A DNA stretch of 64,000 bases from Thalia democratica (Eukaryota), in NCBI GenBank assembly GCA_965202585.1, contig OZ241829.1, positions 16,492,001-16,556,000 on the forward strand. The letters are read 5' to 3'. Position numbers and translations under genes: made by a program. This document shows positions 42,901 through 64,000 of the stretch, piece by piece (position 1 is the stretch's first letter; each line of letters opens with the position of its first letter). The notes under the pieces were generated by a model. That model was not told the DNA's origin. It was given only the letters and a program-made list of their open reading frames with translations, and ran no database searches.

Positions 42901-43699
42901 ATGTATTTTTACTCTATACTGCAGAAACTAAAATCAAAAAATTGTTTTATTCTTTTTATTATTGAAGTTTAAGAAAGGTAAATCATGTAAAATGTGTAGT
43001 TTTGTTGATTATGCAATCAGAAAAAATAACAATAAAAATGCTTGTAGTTTTGTTTTTTTCAAATTATTTTTAAACTATAAAAAGTACCTTTATAAAGGTT
43101 ATAAAATATGCAGTGATATGCAACTAATAGGACTTGTTTATAATTTTTTTTAATTAGTTTAACTTTTTTTTTCAGAAAAACATATATATTTTACGCGAAA
43201 AGTATTTTAAAACTGCTTGAAAAATTTAAACTATATGCTGTATTTATTTATATTTAAATTACATTGTTGGGACAGTATATGCTACTCTTAGTACTTTACA
43301 GCAACTTAGTAAACACTGAAATAACTTAGCCTTTTAATCTCAATAAAATTTAATAAATATAACTGATATTGTTAACCTTGTGTTTTATTAGCAACTTAGT
43401 TATTGTTAATCAGAAAGTTTGCACTACCTACTAATGTTACTGTAATTAAAACAAAAAGCTTTGAGTGTTTAAAATAGTTGCAATAAACATTTTATTTTGT
43501 TTAGTTGCATAAAGCATACTAATTAGTAAGCATAGTAAGCAAATTAGTAAGTGTTTTTTTCTAAGAAAAGTAAACTCATTCTGGCTAACTTCAATATTTT
43601 TTTATCAAAAAAAAAAGATATTTACTCGTTCATTAAAGTTATAAAATTATAATTTTAAGCAAAACTTAGTGGAGGTTTTATTGAACTTTTCTTTTAAAG

Positions 43700-46600
43700 A
43701 TGAGTACCGACTACGATACTGATGACTATTTTTATGAAGAATTTCAGCGTAAAGTAAGTTTATAATTTTTCAAAGGGGTTTTTAAGCTTTTTAATTTATC
43801 ACAACAACATTATTGAAGACATAAAACTTGTAATTGTAATTGTATTGAACAAAAAAACGAAAACGAAAAGATGCTCAAAAGATGACTTGGTCCAAGGACC
43901 TGGGTGCACGAACAGACCTCTCGGTCTTCGAGCGCACACCTAACATAAATAATTAATGATCTAAAAAACTTTACACATAAGAATGTTAACTCTCAAATTA
44001 AAAGCTATCAAAATTGGACTACTTTAAACAATTTTTCAAACAACAAATCTTCAAATAGGTGTATGTAATAGTATTTGACACGTAACAATTACTGTTAACT
44101 TTTTACGAAAACATTTTTTTAGATGACCGCCAGCACACTTGCGAAGAAAGTTGTTGACGTGAAAAGTGCTGGGGACGAACAGCTGGTTTATTTCTTTGAC
44201 GACAACTCAATCAGTGTGGTGGACCACTCAGGAAAAACACTCGCAGCAAAAAGGTATAAATTTGTTTCATGCAACTTATGAAAACTTTTTTAATTAATGC
44301 TTTTAACTACTCCGTTTTGTACTTTTTGTAACAAACTTTCACGTGCTGTGCTTGCTGTTATTTTGGCACATGAAGGTCCAGGTTTCGGCTCTGATGACTT
44401 TCGCTGATGCTTTCTTATTGGTCGTATTACAAATGAGCGTACCAGATGTCTTGCTGATTGAACGCATATTTGCACGGAAACTAAACAACCTGATCATATC
44501 AGCAAAATGTAGCTTCGTGGTAAAACATCATGTCTGTTTGTAGCTCTTTTCGGTTACGCCCAACTAACAAAACTTGCAACTATCAAAACTTGTCTTTTAA
44601 GACTTTCAAGCTAAATTTAAACTTATCCGTAAAGAATTTTTCCAACCAACACAAATACTTTACTTTTTTTTCCAGGTTTGCCGATAAAATTTCCACGATC
44701 GCGGCGTGCCCCGACCACTTCTGCGTGTTTTTCGGCGGCTCGTTCAAATGCTTCAAGATCGAGGAACACCGCCGCCTGGCGGACAGAAAGCTCATGGTTC
44801 AAATATCAACGACGACCCTGGCGAACGTCACGTCGCCTGTCAGGTACGCCGACGTGCAGGACACCGCGTCGGGCTTGGTGGTGGCTTGGTCGGCCAACAA
44901 CGGGTCGGTGGGCTTGTACAAACTGAAGGCGAGGACCACCGAACACTTGCACTTGGGCGAACACGGGGCCGTCTGCGCCCTTTCCCTGTGCCAAAACGCC
45001 CGCTTCCTCGCCTGCGCCCACCCCGACCAGATCAAGGTGTTTTCGGTGAAAGGCGGCGGCCTTTTTGGCGTTTTCGGCTGCGACGGGGTCAGTGCGTCCA
45101 CGACCAACGACCTCCTGTTCAGCCGGACGTTCGAGGTTCTGTCGTACGTCAGCCGGGAGGGGAGGATGTTCTTGTACGAGCTCAACGACCTGTACTTCCA
45201 GGAGGACAAGAGTGAGCCGGTGCCGCCCCGAGCGGTTGTTAATGTCGGGGGTTACCCCGGTGCGAGAGCGCTGGAAGTGGACTACAAGGGGGAGAACTAC
45301 CAGGCGGCGAGGAGGGGGCGGGTGATTGAAGCGGTGGTCAACGGGGACGCGCAGAAAGTTAGCCTGACCAAGTACAACGTGAACGAGGATGGTGAAATAC
45401 GTCAGACGCAGATCAGCAGTAAGTTTAATATTTGTTTGGGTAAAAATAAATAAGTAAATTATAAATATTTTGTAGCCCACCATAAACATGAATTTAATTA
45501 AATTGATAAAACTGTAGGTACGGTTATAGTTGCCCATCCCCTATGATACAATTTCCTAAAACTTTCATCAACATTTTATTGGTTTTCACTGTCTTTGATA
45601 TCAGTTGTTGTCATTAGTGTCATCAATATTTAAGCGCCTTACATAGAATTGACATTAGTCACTGTGACTTAAACTGGTTCATTCCCCCATTTTTGACTTA
45701 TAAGAAATTATACTTTGTCAACACTTTGTGACTTTTTTTGAGCTGTATTTAGTACAAAAAATAGAAATCTATGCTAAACGAAATAACTTGGGCTTAATAA
45801 GTGCTTATTAGGCTAATTAAGGTGATAAAAGGTGATAATTTGAGGTGACATGTTTGGGTTATTTGAGCATATTTTTGCTTAGTTTTGCTTTTTTTATGCT
45901 TACTTTTGCTTATTTCTGTTTACTTTGGCTTTAACATTGTCACCAATTTTTTTTGACTTATTGTGACTTAAAATGTTTCAATTTGTATTTTTATTTCCCT
46001 ATCAGCATTTTGTTTAATATGATCTCCTATTGCCTGTTGGTTTTCCCAACCCCGTATGTTTTAATGGTAATTGTTAAACCGCAAAAGCTTTTTAAAGGGG
46101 CACATAGCAAATGGGAGTATTGCTTTTGTTTAATTAAACGCAGGCTTTAATGGTAAAACTTTTCCAAATCTTATCTTAATTTAAATGCACAATGTAATAA
46201 AATGACGTAAATATATTAATGTGAGAAAAATGTGATAGTTACTGCTTAAGATATGAAAAAGTAACCTACTAGTATAATGTGATTTACTACCTTTGTCTTA
46301 TTCAAGTGTTACTTGAAAGATAGGTATTTCTTAATAAATTTTTTGAAGTAGTCGTTTATAACCTACCTTTTGATTAACAGCTATTTCAAGTAAATCTGAA
46401 GTTATTTTAGTGGTTTTTTAGTAACATACGTTTTAATATTTACTTATTAATTTAATTCACAGTTAAACTCAATTTTGTTAATAACCCATCAGTATAAATA
46501 TTGAAATAATCGCCAACATTAACTACATAAATTTCCCATACTAGTAAACTACCCAGCTATTCTGCCTCTTACTAGAAATTGTCCCCTGATATCCAAATTC

Positions 46601-49600
46601 CCCCAAAATGGGGTTGATGTCGCTAATTTTAGCAAATTCAAAAATTATAATTTTGTAGTTTCTAGCTTTCCTACCGTACATATTAAAAATTAAAAAAATC
46701 AAACTGTGGCCGCGCTTAAATTATTAGTTTCAATTCAACAACTTCAAAGATGCGGACATAGATCACGACTTGGAAGATCTCTCCGACGACGATGAGGTGG
46801 CGAAGACGGAGGCGGCGGAAGAGGAGGCGTGGATCAGGGCGGACGGGAGCAGGTGCGAGTTTGCGGAGCTGGAGGGGATAATCCCCACCGACAAGGACTT
46901 TCACTATTTGGGGTGTTACCCCAAACGGGGAGTGTTCGTCATCTTCAACTTCAAATACGTTCGTTTGAGTTTGCTTGCGCACGTGTGAAAGCGTTTTGAA
47001 GTGCTGGAAACAAAACGTTTTTGATTTTAATTTTGTTGTGGTTTATTGTTATGTTGGATAATTTTGTTCATATAGATCCTAGTTGTCATGTACAAGTTTT
47101 AAAATTGTCTTTAAATTTTTTAAAACCATTTTACTAAGTTGGTTTTTTTATTAATAGTGCAGTTGATTGGAAACTTTTAAGTTAGCACCACTAAAAAAAA
47201 AGTAAATAAGATTAAAACTTAATGACATATAGATGCTATGTTTGTCCACTTAGTTTTACTTACAAAAATAACCTTGTTTAATCTTAAAGCTTTATTTCAC
47301 TGCTGTTTGATAACTAAATTTAAGCGGAACAATAAAGAACAACGTAAAATACAATAAAATATGTACAATGTGTAAATAATTTAGAAACACTTTTTCTTTT
47401 CTAAAATGCAAAAAACATTTTATAAAATAATTTTTATAAAAACATAAACAACTTACAGTAGCTAGCTACAGAGTAAAACATAAAAGTAAGAAACAACTTT
47501 AATTGAATATTTAACAGCTTGACAGCAATCAAGATTTGCAACCAAGCCAACCGACTTCGGAAGATGAGGATGAGACGATTCTGAAGAAGATGGCAAGAAA
47601 GCTGGGATTCGATGAAAACTGCATTTTCGTTCACAGAACCGTCAGGAAGAGGAGGCTCCCGCGTTTTCAGGAACCGTACTCTCAAGTCGACGAAGCCCGC
47701 GAAAAAATCAAAGAAAGTTGTTTATTGTAGTTTGTGTTTCTAATAATAATACTCTGTAAACACTTAGAAAAGTATCAGTACTAGTAACACTACAACACTG
47801 TATAAAACTAATAATAAATTTTTGCATATCAGTCTTTATATTAAACCATATTTAGGTAACTTTGATATCTTCACAAAAAATACATTTTTATATCTAACAG
47901 TTGTGAATAAAAAGAAAAACGATCTCAGTCAGAGTGACTGTTTCGTGTGTGTTTTCATATCAAAGGAGAAATTCACAGTTTCGAGAAACCTGACGAAAGC
48001 CGTTGAGCCAAGCAACTGCCCGGCTCTCGCTGGAAAACCAAAGTTGTTCTTCATTCAGGTAAAAACTGATCTTTTTTTAATGATTTTTTATTGAAAGCTC
48101 TAACTGTTACTGAGGCATGGTCAAATATTATTTCTATTACTTAATGAATAGCATATTTGGTTAGTTTACGATAACAAAATTATGCAGCCTGTTGCACACA
48201 AAATCATCAATACATATTTGATTTCTAAAAAAAATAATTTGTTCCCTTTTTATATCAAAATTTTTATTTTAATTCTCTTTTTATTACTCAAAACTCACCA
48301 ATTGCCTCACGGCCAGGCGCCCAGAGGTGAAAAGAAAGATCTGGGGTTCGATTCCTACCACGTTGTCAGGGACGACGAGCCCTCGACATCGGGTCATGGC
48401 AACCAATCAGCGGAACCAGAAGAGAGTGGCCATGGCAACCGGGAAGCCCCGTGCGTGAGACACCTGCTCCACTACGACAACCCGATGCCGCGGCAGATTC
48501 CGTCGCAGGCGGACCTCCTCATCGCGCATTCCACTTGCAAAGGTTGTTTATTTGATAGTTTGATACTATATTAACCGAAATACACCAAGTGCTTAGACCA
48601 AACTTTTTGAGAGCTTTTTTTACCGTTCAACAAATAATATAGTGTATTTACTTGATGGTTGTTAAAGTTTGTGGCTGTTTTAAAATGTTAACAACGTTGC
48701 AAAGCATACAAAATTGGTTTTTTGCGAATGTTGGTTTTGTAGAGGAGTTTTAAGAATTTAATGAAATAATATAAATAAATTTAGTATTAGTTTTTTGTTG
48801 TACTCAAAAGGTATTATGTTTGTGTAACTTAATTGAAACTGTGCGAACTAGTGTTATTTACTTTAAATAAATTTTATTACTTTGTTGGTTAAAATTAAAA
48901 ATTTTACACTTTTCACTTGCAAAGGTTAAATGTTTAACGTTGTTTTAACTTTATTCGTTTATTTGTTTGATGGTTGTTAAAATCTGTGGTAGTTTGAAAA
49001 GAAAAATTAGCTTTGCAGTGCAAAACTTTATTTGTTTGTTAAAATAACTCTATTTGAGACATTTAATCTTTATAAAATTTATGATAGTTTTAAAAGCTAA
49101 AAACGTTACAAAGCATACAATTTTTTTTAACAAACGTTGTCTTTATACAGAACAGGTTTTACTGCCGTAGTTTTTCATACTTTTTGTTTATTTTTTTTCA
49201 AAAAATACTATAACAGTGTAACTTAATTGAAACTGTTTAGTCTTAAACCATTTAGTGTCACAAATAGTTTTCAAATATTTATTTATTTTATAACAAAACT
49301 GCAACCTTATAAGTTGTTATGTAGATTAAAAATAAACCTTTGTACTCAATTCCACCCGTTGTTAAAGAAGTATTTAATGTTAAGTAAGTCTGCTATATGT
49401 TTTAAAAACTAGTTTTCAAACATGTTAGCATTTATTATGCTATTTAAATCTTGTAGACGTTTCTAGTATACTATTTTAATTTATTATTTTATTAGTTTTT
49501 AAAATGCATTCTTATACAGTTTTTACATTATAAAAAGGATCTATGGAACTTTTATATACAAATGTGCTTAATTTCAAAAACTGTATGTTCTAAAAGTAAC

Positions 49601-50162
49601 ACTTATTTACTGAAAACCTAAAAAAAAATAATTTGTTAAAAGTCTCAATATCTTTCAGATTATGAATCGTGCACTAAAACTTACGGCGAGGCTTCTCCTT
49701 ACCTTAAGTATTTGACACACGTCATCATCAAATACCATATGACGCAGGATCTGCTATCCGTGAGTTTGTTAATAAAATTTACAAACATATGTTTTTAAAA
49801 CCGTTACATTTTGACCGTAACAGTAAATTTTGTATAAATTGATTTTACAGCTTTCTGTTGTGATATACAATGCAAACTTTATAAATCAAAATAAAAACTT
49901 GAACATGTTCTGGAGAATAACTAACTAGTTTAAGCCTTAAAATGAATGTTCCAATAACTTTATTTTTACCATAAGTTTACTACATTCAGTAAAAACTCAC
50001 TTGTGACCTGCGTATAACAATTACAACTTCTACTAATTGTAGATGATGACTCACGTGAACTACTTGATGTCGAACAAGCACACGAACGAGGACCAAACCA
50101 AGCAGATGCCCTCTTTCGTCAGTCAACTCACGAGGAAAATCCGGTTCCTACCAAAACATTAA
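43700..50162 (+). CDS. WD40-like beta-propeller fused to a catalytically inactive caspase-8-like domain (~646 aa)
   Basis: Exons 43700-43753, 44123-44253, 44676-45418, 46750(or 46728)-46958, 47518-47716, 47901-48058, 48317-48542, 49659-49759, 50043-50162. Caspase motifs: PKRGVFVIFN, RKLGF, SDCFVCVFISK, CPALAGKPKLFFIQAPRG, IPSQADLLIAHST, KQMPSFVSQLTRKIRF*. The N-terminal part has beta-strand repeats (SVGLYKL, CALSLCQNARFLACAHPDQIKVFSV). The exon 3-4 junction is the least certain point. Confidence 0.8.
43845..43945 (+). repeat. ~120-bp dispersed structured repeat, copy 5 (best-paired copy)
   Basis: GGTCCAAGGACCTGGGTGCACGAACAGACCTCTCGGTCTTCGAGCGCACACC in intron 1 of the pseudocaspase gene. Confidence 0.75.
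44290..44570 (-). mobile_element. Possible Tc1-like transposase N-terminal fragment (decayed), intronic
   Basis: Frameshifted GRNRKEL...SMRSISK...VRSFVIR...PKPGPSCAKITASTARE.LLQKV resembles the paired HTH region of Tc1 transposases. Confidence 0.4.
48650..49250 (+). repeat. ~310-bp degenerate tandem duplication in an intron
   Basis: Two copies of TTGATGGTTGTTAAA..TGTGG, AACGTT.CAAAGCATACAA and TGTAACTTAATTGAAACTG. Confidence 0.65.
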
Positions 50163-50508
50163 ACTCTTTCTGCAATCGATCTGTGTAATTTACTACGTCT
50201 TTCATCGTGTAATAAACTTTCTTTTCTATTCTGATTTTAAAACCACCGAAAACTAATTAAAAATTTTATCGGCGTATAGCCAAGAAGTTTACTATTGTTT
50301 AGGAACATGTACAAAACCTTTTAAGTTGTAGTAGTATAGGCTTTCCGTGGAAAAATTAAAACTTTTGATTTTCTTAAAAAGTTAAAACCATAAACCAAGT
50401 GACATCTGGAATCAATAGAAAAAGTTTACAGTGTTCAGAAAATCAAACTTTTATAAAGTTATAAAATTTACTTGAAAATGATATAGTATAAATATCTAAC
50501 ACATCAGT

Positions 50509-52636: not shown

Positions 52637-64000
<11,364 letters not shown>

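Follow-up and report, generated by a model that had tools for sequence, protein, structure and literature searches.

Among the described systems closest to the locus reported here, the first is c-FLIP(L), or CFLAR, in which Arg and Tyr replace the catalytic His and Cys and which heterodimerises with caspase-8 (PMC7586951). The tandem DED prodomain of this pseudo-caspase places it in the DISC. A second group is formed by the insect decoy caspases, which are inactive themselves but regulate active paralogues, with Ap-Dronc-1 as a candidate example (PMC7768685). Their prodomains are ordinary, being short or consisting of a CARD, and they arose recently by duplication of active caspases that can still be recognised.

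WD40 propellers enter caspase pathways by another route, as the ligand-sensing part of Apaf-1. In the Apaf-1/Dark/CED-4 scaffolds, one system couples such a propeller to a module of the caspase pathway, Apaf-1 being composed of a CARD, an NB-ARC and two propellers, and recruiting a separate caspase. In bacteria, including cyanobacteria, metacaspase (orthocaspase)-WD40 proteins contain Peptidase_C14 and WD40 in one chain; these are members of the metacaspase branch and not of the animal caspase one, 7-15 canonical WD40 repeats form an additional domain in them, and the His/Cys dyad is retained in the majority (PMC2853523). Finally, lineage-specific fusions of sensor or repeat modules with death-machinery domains are described in passages on the LRR-caspase and TNFR-caspase hybrids of amphioxus, which retain QACxG and are presumed active (PMC2575513), and on the DED-TRADD-N-WD40 proteins of marine invertebrates, where the propeller is present and a caspase domain is not (PMC8195603).

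The gene described here lies in a 64,000-nt stretch of Thalia democratica DNA (the window) and appears to encode a WD40-like propeller joined directly to a dead caspase fold. With c-FLIP(L) it shares a full-length caspase-fold domain, the replacement of both dyad residues, a non-catalytic, putatively recruiting region placed ahead of that domain, and maintenance under selection (PMC7586951). However, the WD40-like propeller stands where c-FLIP(L) has its tandem DEDs, the S1 arginines have been lost as well, and the best overall matches are of the caspase-3/6 type, which leaves kinship with the caspase-8/10 clade tentative at best. DED, CARD and Death gave no Pfam match at E up to 1, either in the N-terminal pieces or in residues 1-320 of the orthologue. 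The "c-FLIP-type architecture" put forward in an earlier note on this DNA is consequently not supported, the common ground being a pseudo-caspase and the idea of a recruiting prodomain, by analogy only. Like the insect decoys, the protein belongs among invertebrate caspase paralogues whose critical residues are substituted, and which in the decoys presumably target other caspases (PMC7768685); unlike them, it has a 312-aa propeller-like prodomain and only 25-31% identity to any named caspase. In contrast to Apaf-1, the propeller is attached to the caspase fold itself, and NB-ARC and NACHT (the STAND ATPases) had no Pfam match on any window piece or on the orthologue. The bacterial metacaspase-WD40 fusions are of independent origin. 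A propeller-caspase fusion is not mentioned in the hybrid-caspase (PMC2575513) or TRADD-N (PMC8195603) passages, and a literature search (pseudocaspase with WD40, caspase prodomains, QAPRG) found no animal example in the portions of text it returned. As far as that search goes, the combination of propeller and caspase is new for animal caspases, pseudo-caspases themselves being already a known kind.

The gene and its predicted product

Positions 43700-50162 of the forward strand contain nine exons, all with GT-AG borders, which together give an uninterrupted 1,941-nt CDS encoding 646 aa. The features, in window coordinates, are these:

43700..43753, + strand: exon 1, with the start codon and an acidic, Tyr-rich N-terminal peptide (MSTDYDTDDY...) that includes a DTDD motif
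44123..44253, + strand: exon 2, propeller-like blade no. 1, with AG/GT borders
44676..45418, + strand: exon 3, most of the WD40-like beta-propeller domain (about 247 aa, 60% G+C)
46750..46958, + strand: exon 4, an acidic linker (DIDHD..SDDD) followed by caspase-fold beta-strand 1 (KRGVFVIFNFKY)
47518..47716, + strand: exon 5, p20-like part, with an acidic stretch at the position of the caspase R-x-G S1 arginine (alignment with active caspases)
47901..48058, + strand: exon 6, p20-like core of 52 aa, with SKE (47960-47968) replacing SHG, and ending in ..KPKLFFIQ
48317..48542, + strand: exon 7, APRG, the inter-subunit linker and the beginning of the p10-like part
49659..49759, + strand: exon 8, p10-like, with S-C-T (49667-49675) at the caspase S-W/H-R position (second S1 arginine) and SP at the GSW position
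50043..50162, + strand: exon 9, C-terminal end of the p10-like part, containing the strand region of the dimer interface (KQMPSFVSQLTRKIRF) and closing with the stop codon TAA (50160-50162)
50206..50220, + strand: 3'UTR block CGTGTAATAAACTTT, with an AATAAA signal inside, identical in the orthologous contig

The predicted product, presumably cytosolic, begins with a strictly conserved acidic peptide. This is followed by divergent WD40-like repeats (about 290 aa), then by an acidic linker, and last by a caspase-fold domain complete with p20-like and p10-like parts. G+C content is 33-60% in the exons (42-60% if exon 1 is left aside) versus 23-35% in the introns. A 243-aa antisense ORF (44806-45537) was put down to the high G+C content of the exon, and an Rfam scan of the window gave no match.

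In a search of 1.84 billion (1.84e9) representative proteins, the sole true relative was a 653-aa protein, matched by exon 3 in phmmer at E = 3.4e-71. Further family members were found neither by a homologue search with this orthologue nor by one with exon 3, the exon-3 ORF had no exact match, and metagenome scans yielded none for conserved propeller peptides or for the degenerate KPKLFFIQAPRG pattern. The best caspase matches, a 625-aa mayfly and a 465-aa snail protein, are tandem double-caspases with an intact QAC and no propeller, and were discarded as relatives of the architecture. At the 5' end of the model, the exon 1 start is preceded by an in-frame stop at a distance of 6 codons, the tblastn match of orthologue residues 1-20 falls on exon 1, and residues 1-10 are identical in the two proteins; exon 2 is 67% identical to orthologue residues 19-62, and the exon 8 block is at least 80% identical.

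Homology of the C-terminal half to caspases is, by its profile scores, far beyond chance. Pfam Peptidase_C14 (PF00656; caspase family, MEROPS C14A) matches the orthologue with 93.1 bits (E = 2.7e-26; cutoff 21.4), exon 6 of the window alone reaches 22.4 bits, above the same cutoff, exon 9 matches the profile at positions 203-231, and PDB caspases (caspase-6/-3) are found at E = 1e-15. Matches to the SARS spike RBD (E about 0.05-1) were regarded as chance. The description "caspase-8-like" given in the earlier note holds for the last exon only, which reads ..VNYLMSNK..KQMPSFVSQLTRKIRF.. as had been stated there and whose best PDB match, a weak one (E = 0.047), is the caspase-8 p10. In contrast, the whole domain is best matched in the PDB by caspase-6/-3 and an ancestral effector caspase, and p20-like exon 6 by the ancestral effector caspase-3/6/7 (E = 1.1e-6). 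Among named proteins, those of the caspase-3-like, caspase-6 and insect caspase-1-like types come closest.

The active site was read from an alignment to amphioxus caspase-6 and other active caspases. At the position of the catalytic His there is the Lys of SKE, which is Asn in the orthologue (SNK), within a loop some 5-9 residues shorter. At that of the catalytic Cys there is Pro (48320-48322), the Q encoded by 48056-48058 being spliced to A-P-R-G (48317-48328); QAPRG is identical in the orthologue, so that Pro is found in both. The earlier reading of SKE for SHG and of QAPRG for QAC(R/Q)G, in an intact frame, was thus borne out by coordinates, alignment and orthologue. In caspases, two arginines of the S1 pocket bind the P1 aspartate. 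The first is replaced in the window by the acidic stretch of exon 5, which is deleted in the orthologue, and the second by Thr (of S-C-T) in both proteins. No compensating Cys/His pair is conserved nearby in the alignment with active caspases. With the catalytic His, the catalytic Cys and both S1 arginines lost, the protein should be unable to cleave, and on this alignment the domain is a pseudo-caspase lacking all the residues needed for cleavage.

Possible roles of the protein

As a whole, the observations are best explained, and with good likelihood, by a single animal gene of nine exons, intact and kept by selection, whose product is a cytosolic protein made of a propeller and a non-cleaving pseudo-caspase. 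The role of such a protein is probably a regulating or scaffolding one, not cutting, and it would act through binding. The caspase-fold half may still pair with another caspase fold, be it a second copy of its own or that of an active caspase, in the manner of c-FLIP(L) and the insect decoys; on this analogy, pairing with an active caspase in particular is a serious possibility, its chances somewhat short of even. The propeller would dock the protein to a ligand or a complex, while the conserved Asp-rich N-terminal peptide and the linker may be sites that active caspases bind or cut.

A more specific scheme, drawn from analogy and speculative enough that we consider it improbable, is that of a one-chain death or immune switch. 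Here, the propeller would sense an intracellular ligand (for example, a danger or pathogen molecule) and cluster or expose the dead caspase domain, which in turn would template or block the activation of a separate live caspase by heterodimerisation. If true, one polypeptide would both sense, as Apaf-1 does, and serve as a dimer partner, as c-FLIP does, with neither a STAND ATPase nor a death-fold adaptor.

It may also be that the protein is non-catalytic and plays no part in caspase regulation. The dead fold would then have been re-used as a module for binding proteins or peptides in general, and the propeller would direct the protein elsewhere, for instance to trafficking, cilia or chromatin. 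The family is tiny (two members in the databases searched) and remote from active caspases (25-31% identity), and the loops of the former substrate groove (QAPRG and SCTKT) figure, together with the C-terminal strand, among the best conserved blocks in spite of the loss of catalysis, which fits a new binding function. In addition, the Atlas neighbours of the propeller, obtained from protein-language-model features, include Vps11, Vps41, CFAP43 and WDR35 types. However, these neighbours reflect the class of fold and not function. The p10 half forms the dimer interface in caspases, and it is precisely the p10-like part, exon 9 included, that is best conserved between window and orthologue (74% identity). 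Moreover, both c-FLIP(L) (PMC7586951) and the insect decoy caspases (PMC7768685) act on active paralogues. A generic binding module is considered unlikely on balance, yet it keeps more weight than any of the alternatives discussed below.

The N-terminal repeat region

The caspase part is preceded by about 312 beta-rich aa with no DED or CARD match, in agreement with the roughly 300 aa of beta-strand repeats that the earlier note had placed where a prodomain would be. Several lines of evidence suggest, with moderate confidence, that this region is WD40- or beta-propeller-like, as had also been proposed there. A profile built from the two orthologues matched, in canonical blade register and over about 1.5 blades, the WD40 domain of PRPF19 (E = 9e-5) and RACK1 (E = 0.0075) in the PDB, and the hhalign matches repeat at steps of 42 residues. 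Pfam Beta-prop_EML_2 matched corresponding positions of both orthologues (E = 3.6e-4 and 1.6e-3), phmmer matched multi-WD40 proteins with library-wide E values of 3e-5 to 4e-4, and the named Atlas neighbours are all propeller families (scores of 0.92-0.96). MAFFT distinguished seven WD40-like units along the domain, which probably consists of seven short blades spanning about 290 aa. When WD40 proteins were supplied as helper rows of the alignment, which makes the result partly circular, AlphaFold produced a model with a pTM of 0.63 and a pLDDT of 60.7, with 150 residues at a pLDDT of at least 70, whose top Foldseek matches were seven-bladed propellers, among them WIPI3, WDR5 and G-beta (TM about 0.5).

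Some of the results would also suit a different beta-rich fold, or partly disordered repeats, instead of a closed WD40 propeller. All Pfam propeller scores lie far below gathering (at best, 20.4 bits for Beta-prop_EML_2 against a cutoff of 90), WD40 itself (PF00400) is absent from the matches listed, and the significant sequence matches span only about 1.5-2.5 blades. RCC1-type repeat proteins were also found among the weak matches; these were repeat-summed, hhalign did not confirm them, and they were rejected. The helper-row model leaves residues 263-320 (the last 60 or so, corresponding to the last blade or blades) unmodelled, and from a two-row alignment AlphaFold could model neither domain of the full-length orthologue (pLDDT 35). 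This failure is nevertheless uninformative, because the undoubted caspase domain was missed in the same run, and four lines (PDB profile, Pfam, language-model features, and AlphaFold with Foldseek) agree on a propeller, as do the seven units delineated by MAFFT. A fold of another kind is thus judged distinctly unlikely, and the propeller remains the preferred reading.

Integrity and constraint of the gene

The propeller and the caspase fold are separated by a 1.3-kb intron (donor 45418, acceptor 46750), and it could be argued that two genes have been wrongly joined, one for a propeller, closed by the stop at 45451-45453, and the other, downstream of it, for a caspase-like protein. The exon-3 ORF does continue to this stop, 35 nt beyond the donor, the pyrimidine tract of the 46750 acceptor is mediocre, and a rival AG lies out of frame at 46727. 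Furthermore, the two read runs that contain exon 3 are both genomic DNA, with even depth over introns and no splice joints, so the junction from 45418 to 46750 rests on frame logic and on the orthologue. The orthologue, however, is located on a 2,163-nt intronless JGI contig in which UTRs flank an unbroken ORF, and which we read as mRNA- or transcript-like; this ORF spans the junction and encodes both halves. The window model is collinear with it over the full length (57% identity, the alignment crossing from propeller to caspase fold), and tblastn with the orthologue matched all nine window exons in order. This argues for one gene rather than a mis-joined model, and it upholds the earlier proposal that propeller and caspase belong to one chain. 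The details of the junction are also favourable, since the exon 3 donor (AGCA|GTAAGT) is strong, no additional exon was found in the 1.3-kb intron, the two halves evolve at equal rates, and exon 4, collinear with the orthologue, has no in-frame Met and hence cannot start a separate protein. Of the two acceptors previously suggested, 46750 is in frame with the 45418 donor and was retained, whereas 46728 causes a frameshift, with a stop after about 22 codons, and was rejected. A wrong fusion of two genes is accordingly regarded as very unlikely.

The disappearance of every catalytic residue could also be expected of a caspase relic that decays as a pseudogene or evolves neutrally. Against this, the 646-codon frame is open across all nine exons with its splice sites intact, and the orthologue has retained the same substitutions in spite of saturated synonymous sites. 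The comparison of the window with the orthologue gave a pN of 0.26 and a pS of 0.68, with a dN/dS of about 0.18 that is alike in both halves, a value to be taken as approximate since it derives from two sequences only with saturated dS. This is the check that the earlier note had called for, and the outcome is not neutral. Within the species, a second haplotype recovered from DNA reads shows, among the exonic differences listed, 18 synonymous and 4 non-synonymous changes and no stops. As judged from these substitution patterns, both halves are under purifying selection, and a pseudogene is effectively refuted. Least credible of all is a protease still active through non-canonical residues: variant pentapeptides around the Cys are tolerated in some caspases, such as those with Dronc-type motifs (PMC7768685), but these keep the Cys, while here it is Pro, the His is Lys or Asn in a shortened loop, both S1 arginines are gone and no Cys/His pair is conserved nearby in compensation.

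Pseudo-caspases are few, and c-FLIP and the insect decoys carry DEDs or other ordinary caspase prodomains. In the gene described here, purifying selection has preserved a dead caspase fold in no fewer than two divergent lineages, with a putative propeller replacing the death-fold prodomain, which would show another way of connecting caspase-fold modules to the pathways of the cell. Should the propeller be a ligand sensor, the protein would offer a very compact model for coupling sensing to caspase control. In either case, the finding adds to the lineage-specific rewiring of the death and immune machinery in invertebrates.

Gene structure and the single-chain fusion

Base composition across the window is strongly A+T-biased, 2-kb bins having 22-33% G+C, and a G+C-rich island stands out at 44-50 kb. 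Reading of positions 43600-50400, followed by the trial of splice combinations, yielded a gene of nine exons whose G+C content (33-60%) exceeds that of the introns (23-35%). The joined exons form an open coding sequence of 1,941 nt (646 codons), preceded by an in-frame stop six codons before the ATG.

Exons of the gene model (all borders GT..AG)
43700-43753, + strand, exon 1
44123-44253, + strand, exon 2
44676-45418, + strand, exon 3 (bulk of the propeller-like domain)
46750-46958, + strand, exon 4 (linker)
47518-47716, + strand, exon 5
47901-48058, + strand, exon 6
48317-48542, + strand, exon 7
49659-49759, + strand, exon 8
50043-50162, + strand, exon 9

The motifs singled out in the earlier note were all recovered: SKE at 47960-47968, Q/APRG across the 48058/48317 junction, and a C-terminal exon reading VNYLMSNK..KQMP..TRKIRF. 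Of the two intron 3 acceptors offered there, 46750 was retained, since it alone is in frame with the donor at 45418; 46728 was rejected because its reading frame runs into a stop after about 22 codons.

Some further features of the locus deserve mention. An antisense ORF of 243 residues, rich in Arg, Pro and Gly, crosses exon 3 on the minus strand (44806-45537); rather than a gene, it most likely reflects the high G+C content (60%) of this exon. Within intron 7, positions 48510-48709 reach a summed contig depth of about 30,000, compared with 40-170 elsewhere, in both DNA runs described below; either a short repeat of very high copy number or a sequence also present in something abundant lies here. 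Exon-sized ORFs at 62159-63995 (minus strand) belong to a neighboring gene, convergent with the pseudo-caspase gene, and carry what we take to be clear selenoprotein O (SelO)-like motifs.

The two public runs containing exon 3 have even coverage across introns and exons and lack splice joints, and are therefore genomic DNA. The evidence for a single chain came from an orthologue. When exon 3 by itself was run with HMMER against all 1.84 billion representative proteins, the sole true relative was P0001, a protein of 653 residues (E = 3.4e-71), encoded as a single uninterrupted ORF (38-1999) on a JGI contig of 2,163 nt that appears transcript-like, having short UTRs, an in-frame stop 5' of the ATG and AATAAA signals 3'. 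Over their entire lengths, the window model and P0001 can be aligned collinearly (57% identity), the propeller/caspase junction included (QISN-ADIDHD in the window, QLSSEYGEDIDHD in P0001), and in a tblastn search with P0001 the only matches in the window were the nine exons, in their proper order. Exon 4 has no in-frame Met and is therefore unable to head a separate protein. The proposal that propeller and dead caspase share one gene is thus upheld: the single-chain architecture is established for the family and very likely at the window locus.

Beyond the coding sequence, a 15-nt block in the 3'UTR, CGTGTAATAAACTTT, lies about 45 nt past the stop, at 50206-50220 of the window and approximately 2026-2040 of the orthologous contig. 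The two copies are identical although synonymous sites are saturated, and a role as a conserved poly(A) or regulatory element is possible.

A caspase fold without its catalytic residues

The fold of the C-terminal half is clear. Pfam Peptidase_C14 scores 93 bits on P0001 and exceeds its threshold even on the 52 residues of the window's exon 6 alone, and PDB caspases were matched at E = 1e-15. Alignment with amphioxus caspase-6 and other active caspases showed that neither orthologue retains any residue of the catalytic machinery.

Catalytic-site residues in the window protein and in P0001
R-x-G arginine (first S1 Arg): within an acidic stretch in the window; region deleted in P0001
SHG (catalytic His): SKE in the window, SNK in P0001; loop shortened in both
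QACRG (catalytic Cys): QAPRG in both
S-H/W-R (second S1 Arg): S-C-T in both
GSW: SP in both

Judged by these residues, the domain is a pseudo-caspase, not a variant active site; the loss of His and Cys reported earlier holds, and both S1 arginines are gone as well. The description of the domain as caspase-8-like fared less well. The last exon alone is closest, weakly, to the caspase-8 p10 (E = 0.047), which explains that impression, while for exon 6 the best match is an ancestral effector caspase-3/6/7 (E = 1.1e-6), and for the whole domain caspase-6 and caspase-3. The nearest named proteins, at 25-31% identity, are caspase-3-like proteins (Ciona, Styela, Nematostella), amphioxus caspase-6 and insect caspase-1-like proteins. 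The caspase-8 label is an analogy only.

Other caspase-related proteins were met in these searches. P0014 (ENA, 488 residues) is an unrelated second pseudo-caspase that keeps SHG and SWR and has QSERG for QACRG; its N-terminus resembles a coiled coil, and its long inter-subunit linker is built of repeated QKEDEDKGMVV units. P0015 (Neocloeon triangulifer, 625 residues) carries two tandem caspase domains in one chain with QAC intact, and P0016 (Batillaria attramentaria, 465 residues) more than two with QMC pentapeptides, an unusual architecture in its own right.

Evidence for a propeller in the N-terminal half

No Pfam family reached its gathering score on the N-terminal half. Six of the eight weak matches of exon 3 were beta-propeller families, and one of these, Beta-prop_EML_2, was also matched at equivalent positions in the orthologue (E = 3.6e-4, below the gathering score). 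After P0001, library-wide phmmer returned multi-WD40 proteins (E = 3e-5 to 4e-4), together with RCC1-repeat proteins whose scores were summed over many repeats. With a two-orthologue profile, hhalign matched about 100 residues to WD40 arrays, the offsets moving in 42-residue steps, and against PDB sequences the profile found the PRPF19 WD40 domain (E = 9e-5) and RACK1 (0.0075) in the canonical strand register. In a protein-language-model feature search, the orthologue's N-terminal half and the window's exon 3 fell among propeller families only (scores 0.92-0.96), the recognition value for exon 3 being low.

With the two orthologues only, AlphaFold was poor everywhere (pLDDT 35), and this result is uninformative since the undoubted caspase domain failed too. 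When six WD40 segments were added to the alignment as rows, the N-terminal domain reached pTM 0.63, with 150 residues at pLDDT of at least 70 and residues 263-320 unmodeled, and Foldseek matched the model to the seven-bladed propellers WIPI3, WDR5, G-beta and PRPF19 (E ~1e-9, TM ~0.5); being partly circular, both steps count as a compatibility test only. Taken with the profile, Pfam, hhalign and language-model results, which lend moderate support to the original claim, the N-terminal half is quite probably a WD40-like propeller.

Constraint, mode of action and related systems

Nei-Gojobori comparison of the window coding sequence with the orthologous contig gave pN = 0.26 and pS = 0.68; dN/dS is about 0.18, essentially equal in the propeller and caspase halves, a value from two sequences with saturated pS. 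As independent evidence, a second haplotype, present in one of the two DNA runs, has 18 synonymous changes among the 22 exonic differences listed, the 4 replacements falling in loops or linkers, with no stops; these counts cover the listed differences only and are indicative. Among those listed, differences per base are more frequent in exons (22 in ~1.8 kb, mostly synonymous) than in introns (18 in ~4.2 kb; window 44110-50109), and GC3 is 70% in the window coding sequence (genome ~25% G+C) compared with 44% in the orthologue; biased gene conversion or a listing bias could account for this.

Best conserved are the first ten residues (MSTDYDTDDY), a few blade strands, the QAPRG loop and its flanks, the block QIPSQADLLIA..STCKDY.SCTKT and the C-terminal KQMPSFVSQLTRK.RF. 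The N-terminus is acidic and has no signal peptide-like stretch, and the product is a constrained, non-catalytic, two-module protein, predicted to be cytosolic. As a speculation, the strictly conserved DTDD (N-terminus) and DIDHD (linker) resemble Asp-directed recognition or cleavage sites.

The dimer interface in caspases is formed by the p10 strands, and the p10-like region is 74% identical between the orthologues, compared with 48-55% in the propeller, linker, p20-like and inter-subunit regions. c-FLIP(L) pairs with caspase-8 by the p10 dimer interface (PMC7586951), and decoy caspases have been reported in insects (PMC7768685). Because of this conservation and these precedents, the most economical reading is that the dead domain would still pair with a caspase fold, that of a second copy or of a live caspase, the propeller perhaps providing localization or ligand binding. 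In a serious rival reading, the dead fold now serves as a binding module in a process other than cell death; the conserved loops of the former substrate groove would fit this as well.

If pairing is the correct reading, the protein would function much like c-FLIP or a decoy caspase, as a pseudo-caspase. However, it carries no DEDs, and its nearest matches are mixed (caspase-8 for the last exon, caspase-3/6 types for exon 6 and the whole domain); it cannot be counted as a c-FLIP, and "c-FLIP-type", as it was first called, survives as an analogy only. Like Apaf-1 it has a probable propeller, but it lacks NB-ARC and CARD. Peptidase_C14 and WD40 are commonly paired in cyanobacterial metacaspases, which represent a different branch of the family, most of them keeping the His/Cys dyad (PMC2853523). 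Amphioxus LRR-caspase and TNFR-caspase hybrids keep QACxG (PMC2575513), and the DED-TRADD-N-WD40 proteins of marine invertebrates lack a caspase domain (PMC8195603). A literature search of limited coverage found no animal propeller-caspase fusion, live or dead, which is not proof of novelty. Support is good for the fusion and for the pseudo-enzyme status, and moderate for the propeller identity; with two sequences so far, the family represents a new domain-architecture variant among pseudo-caspases.
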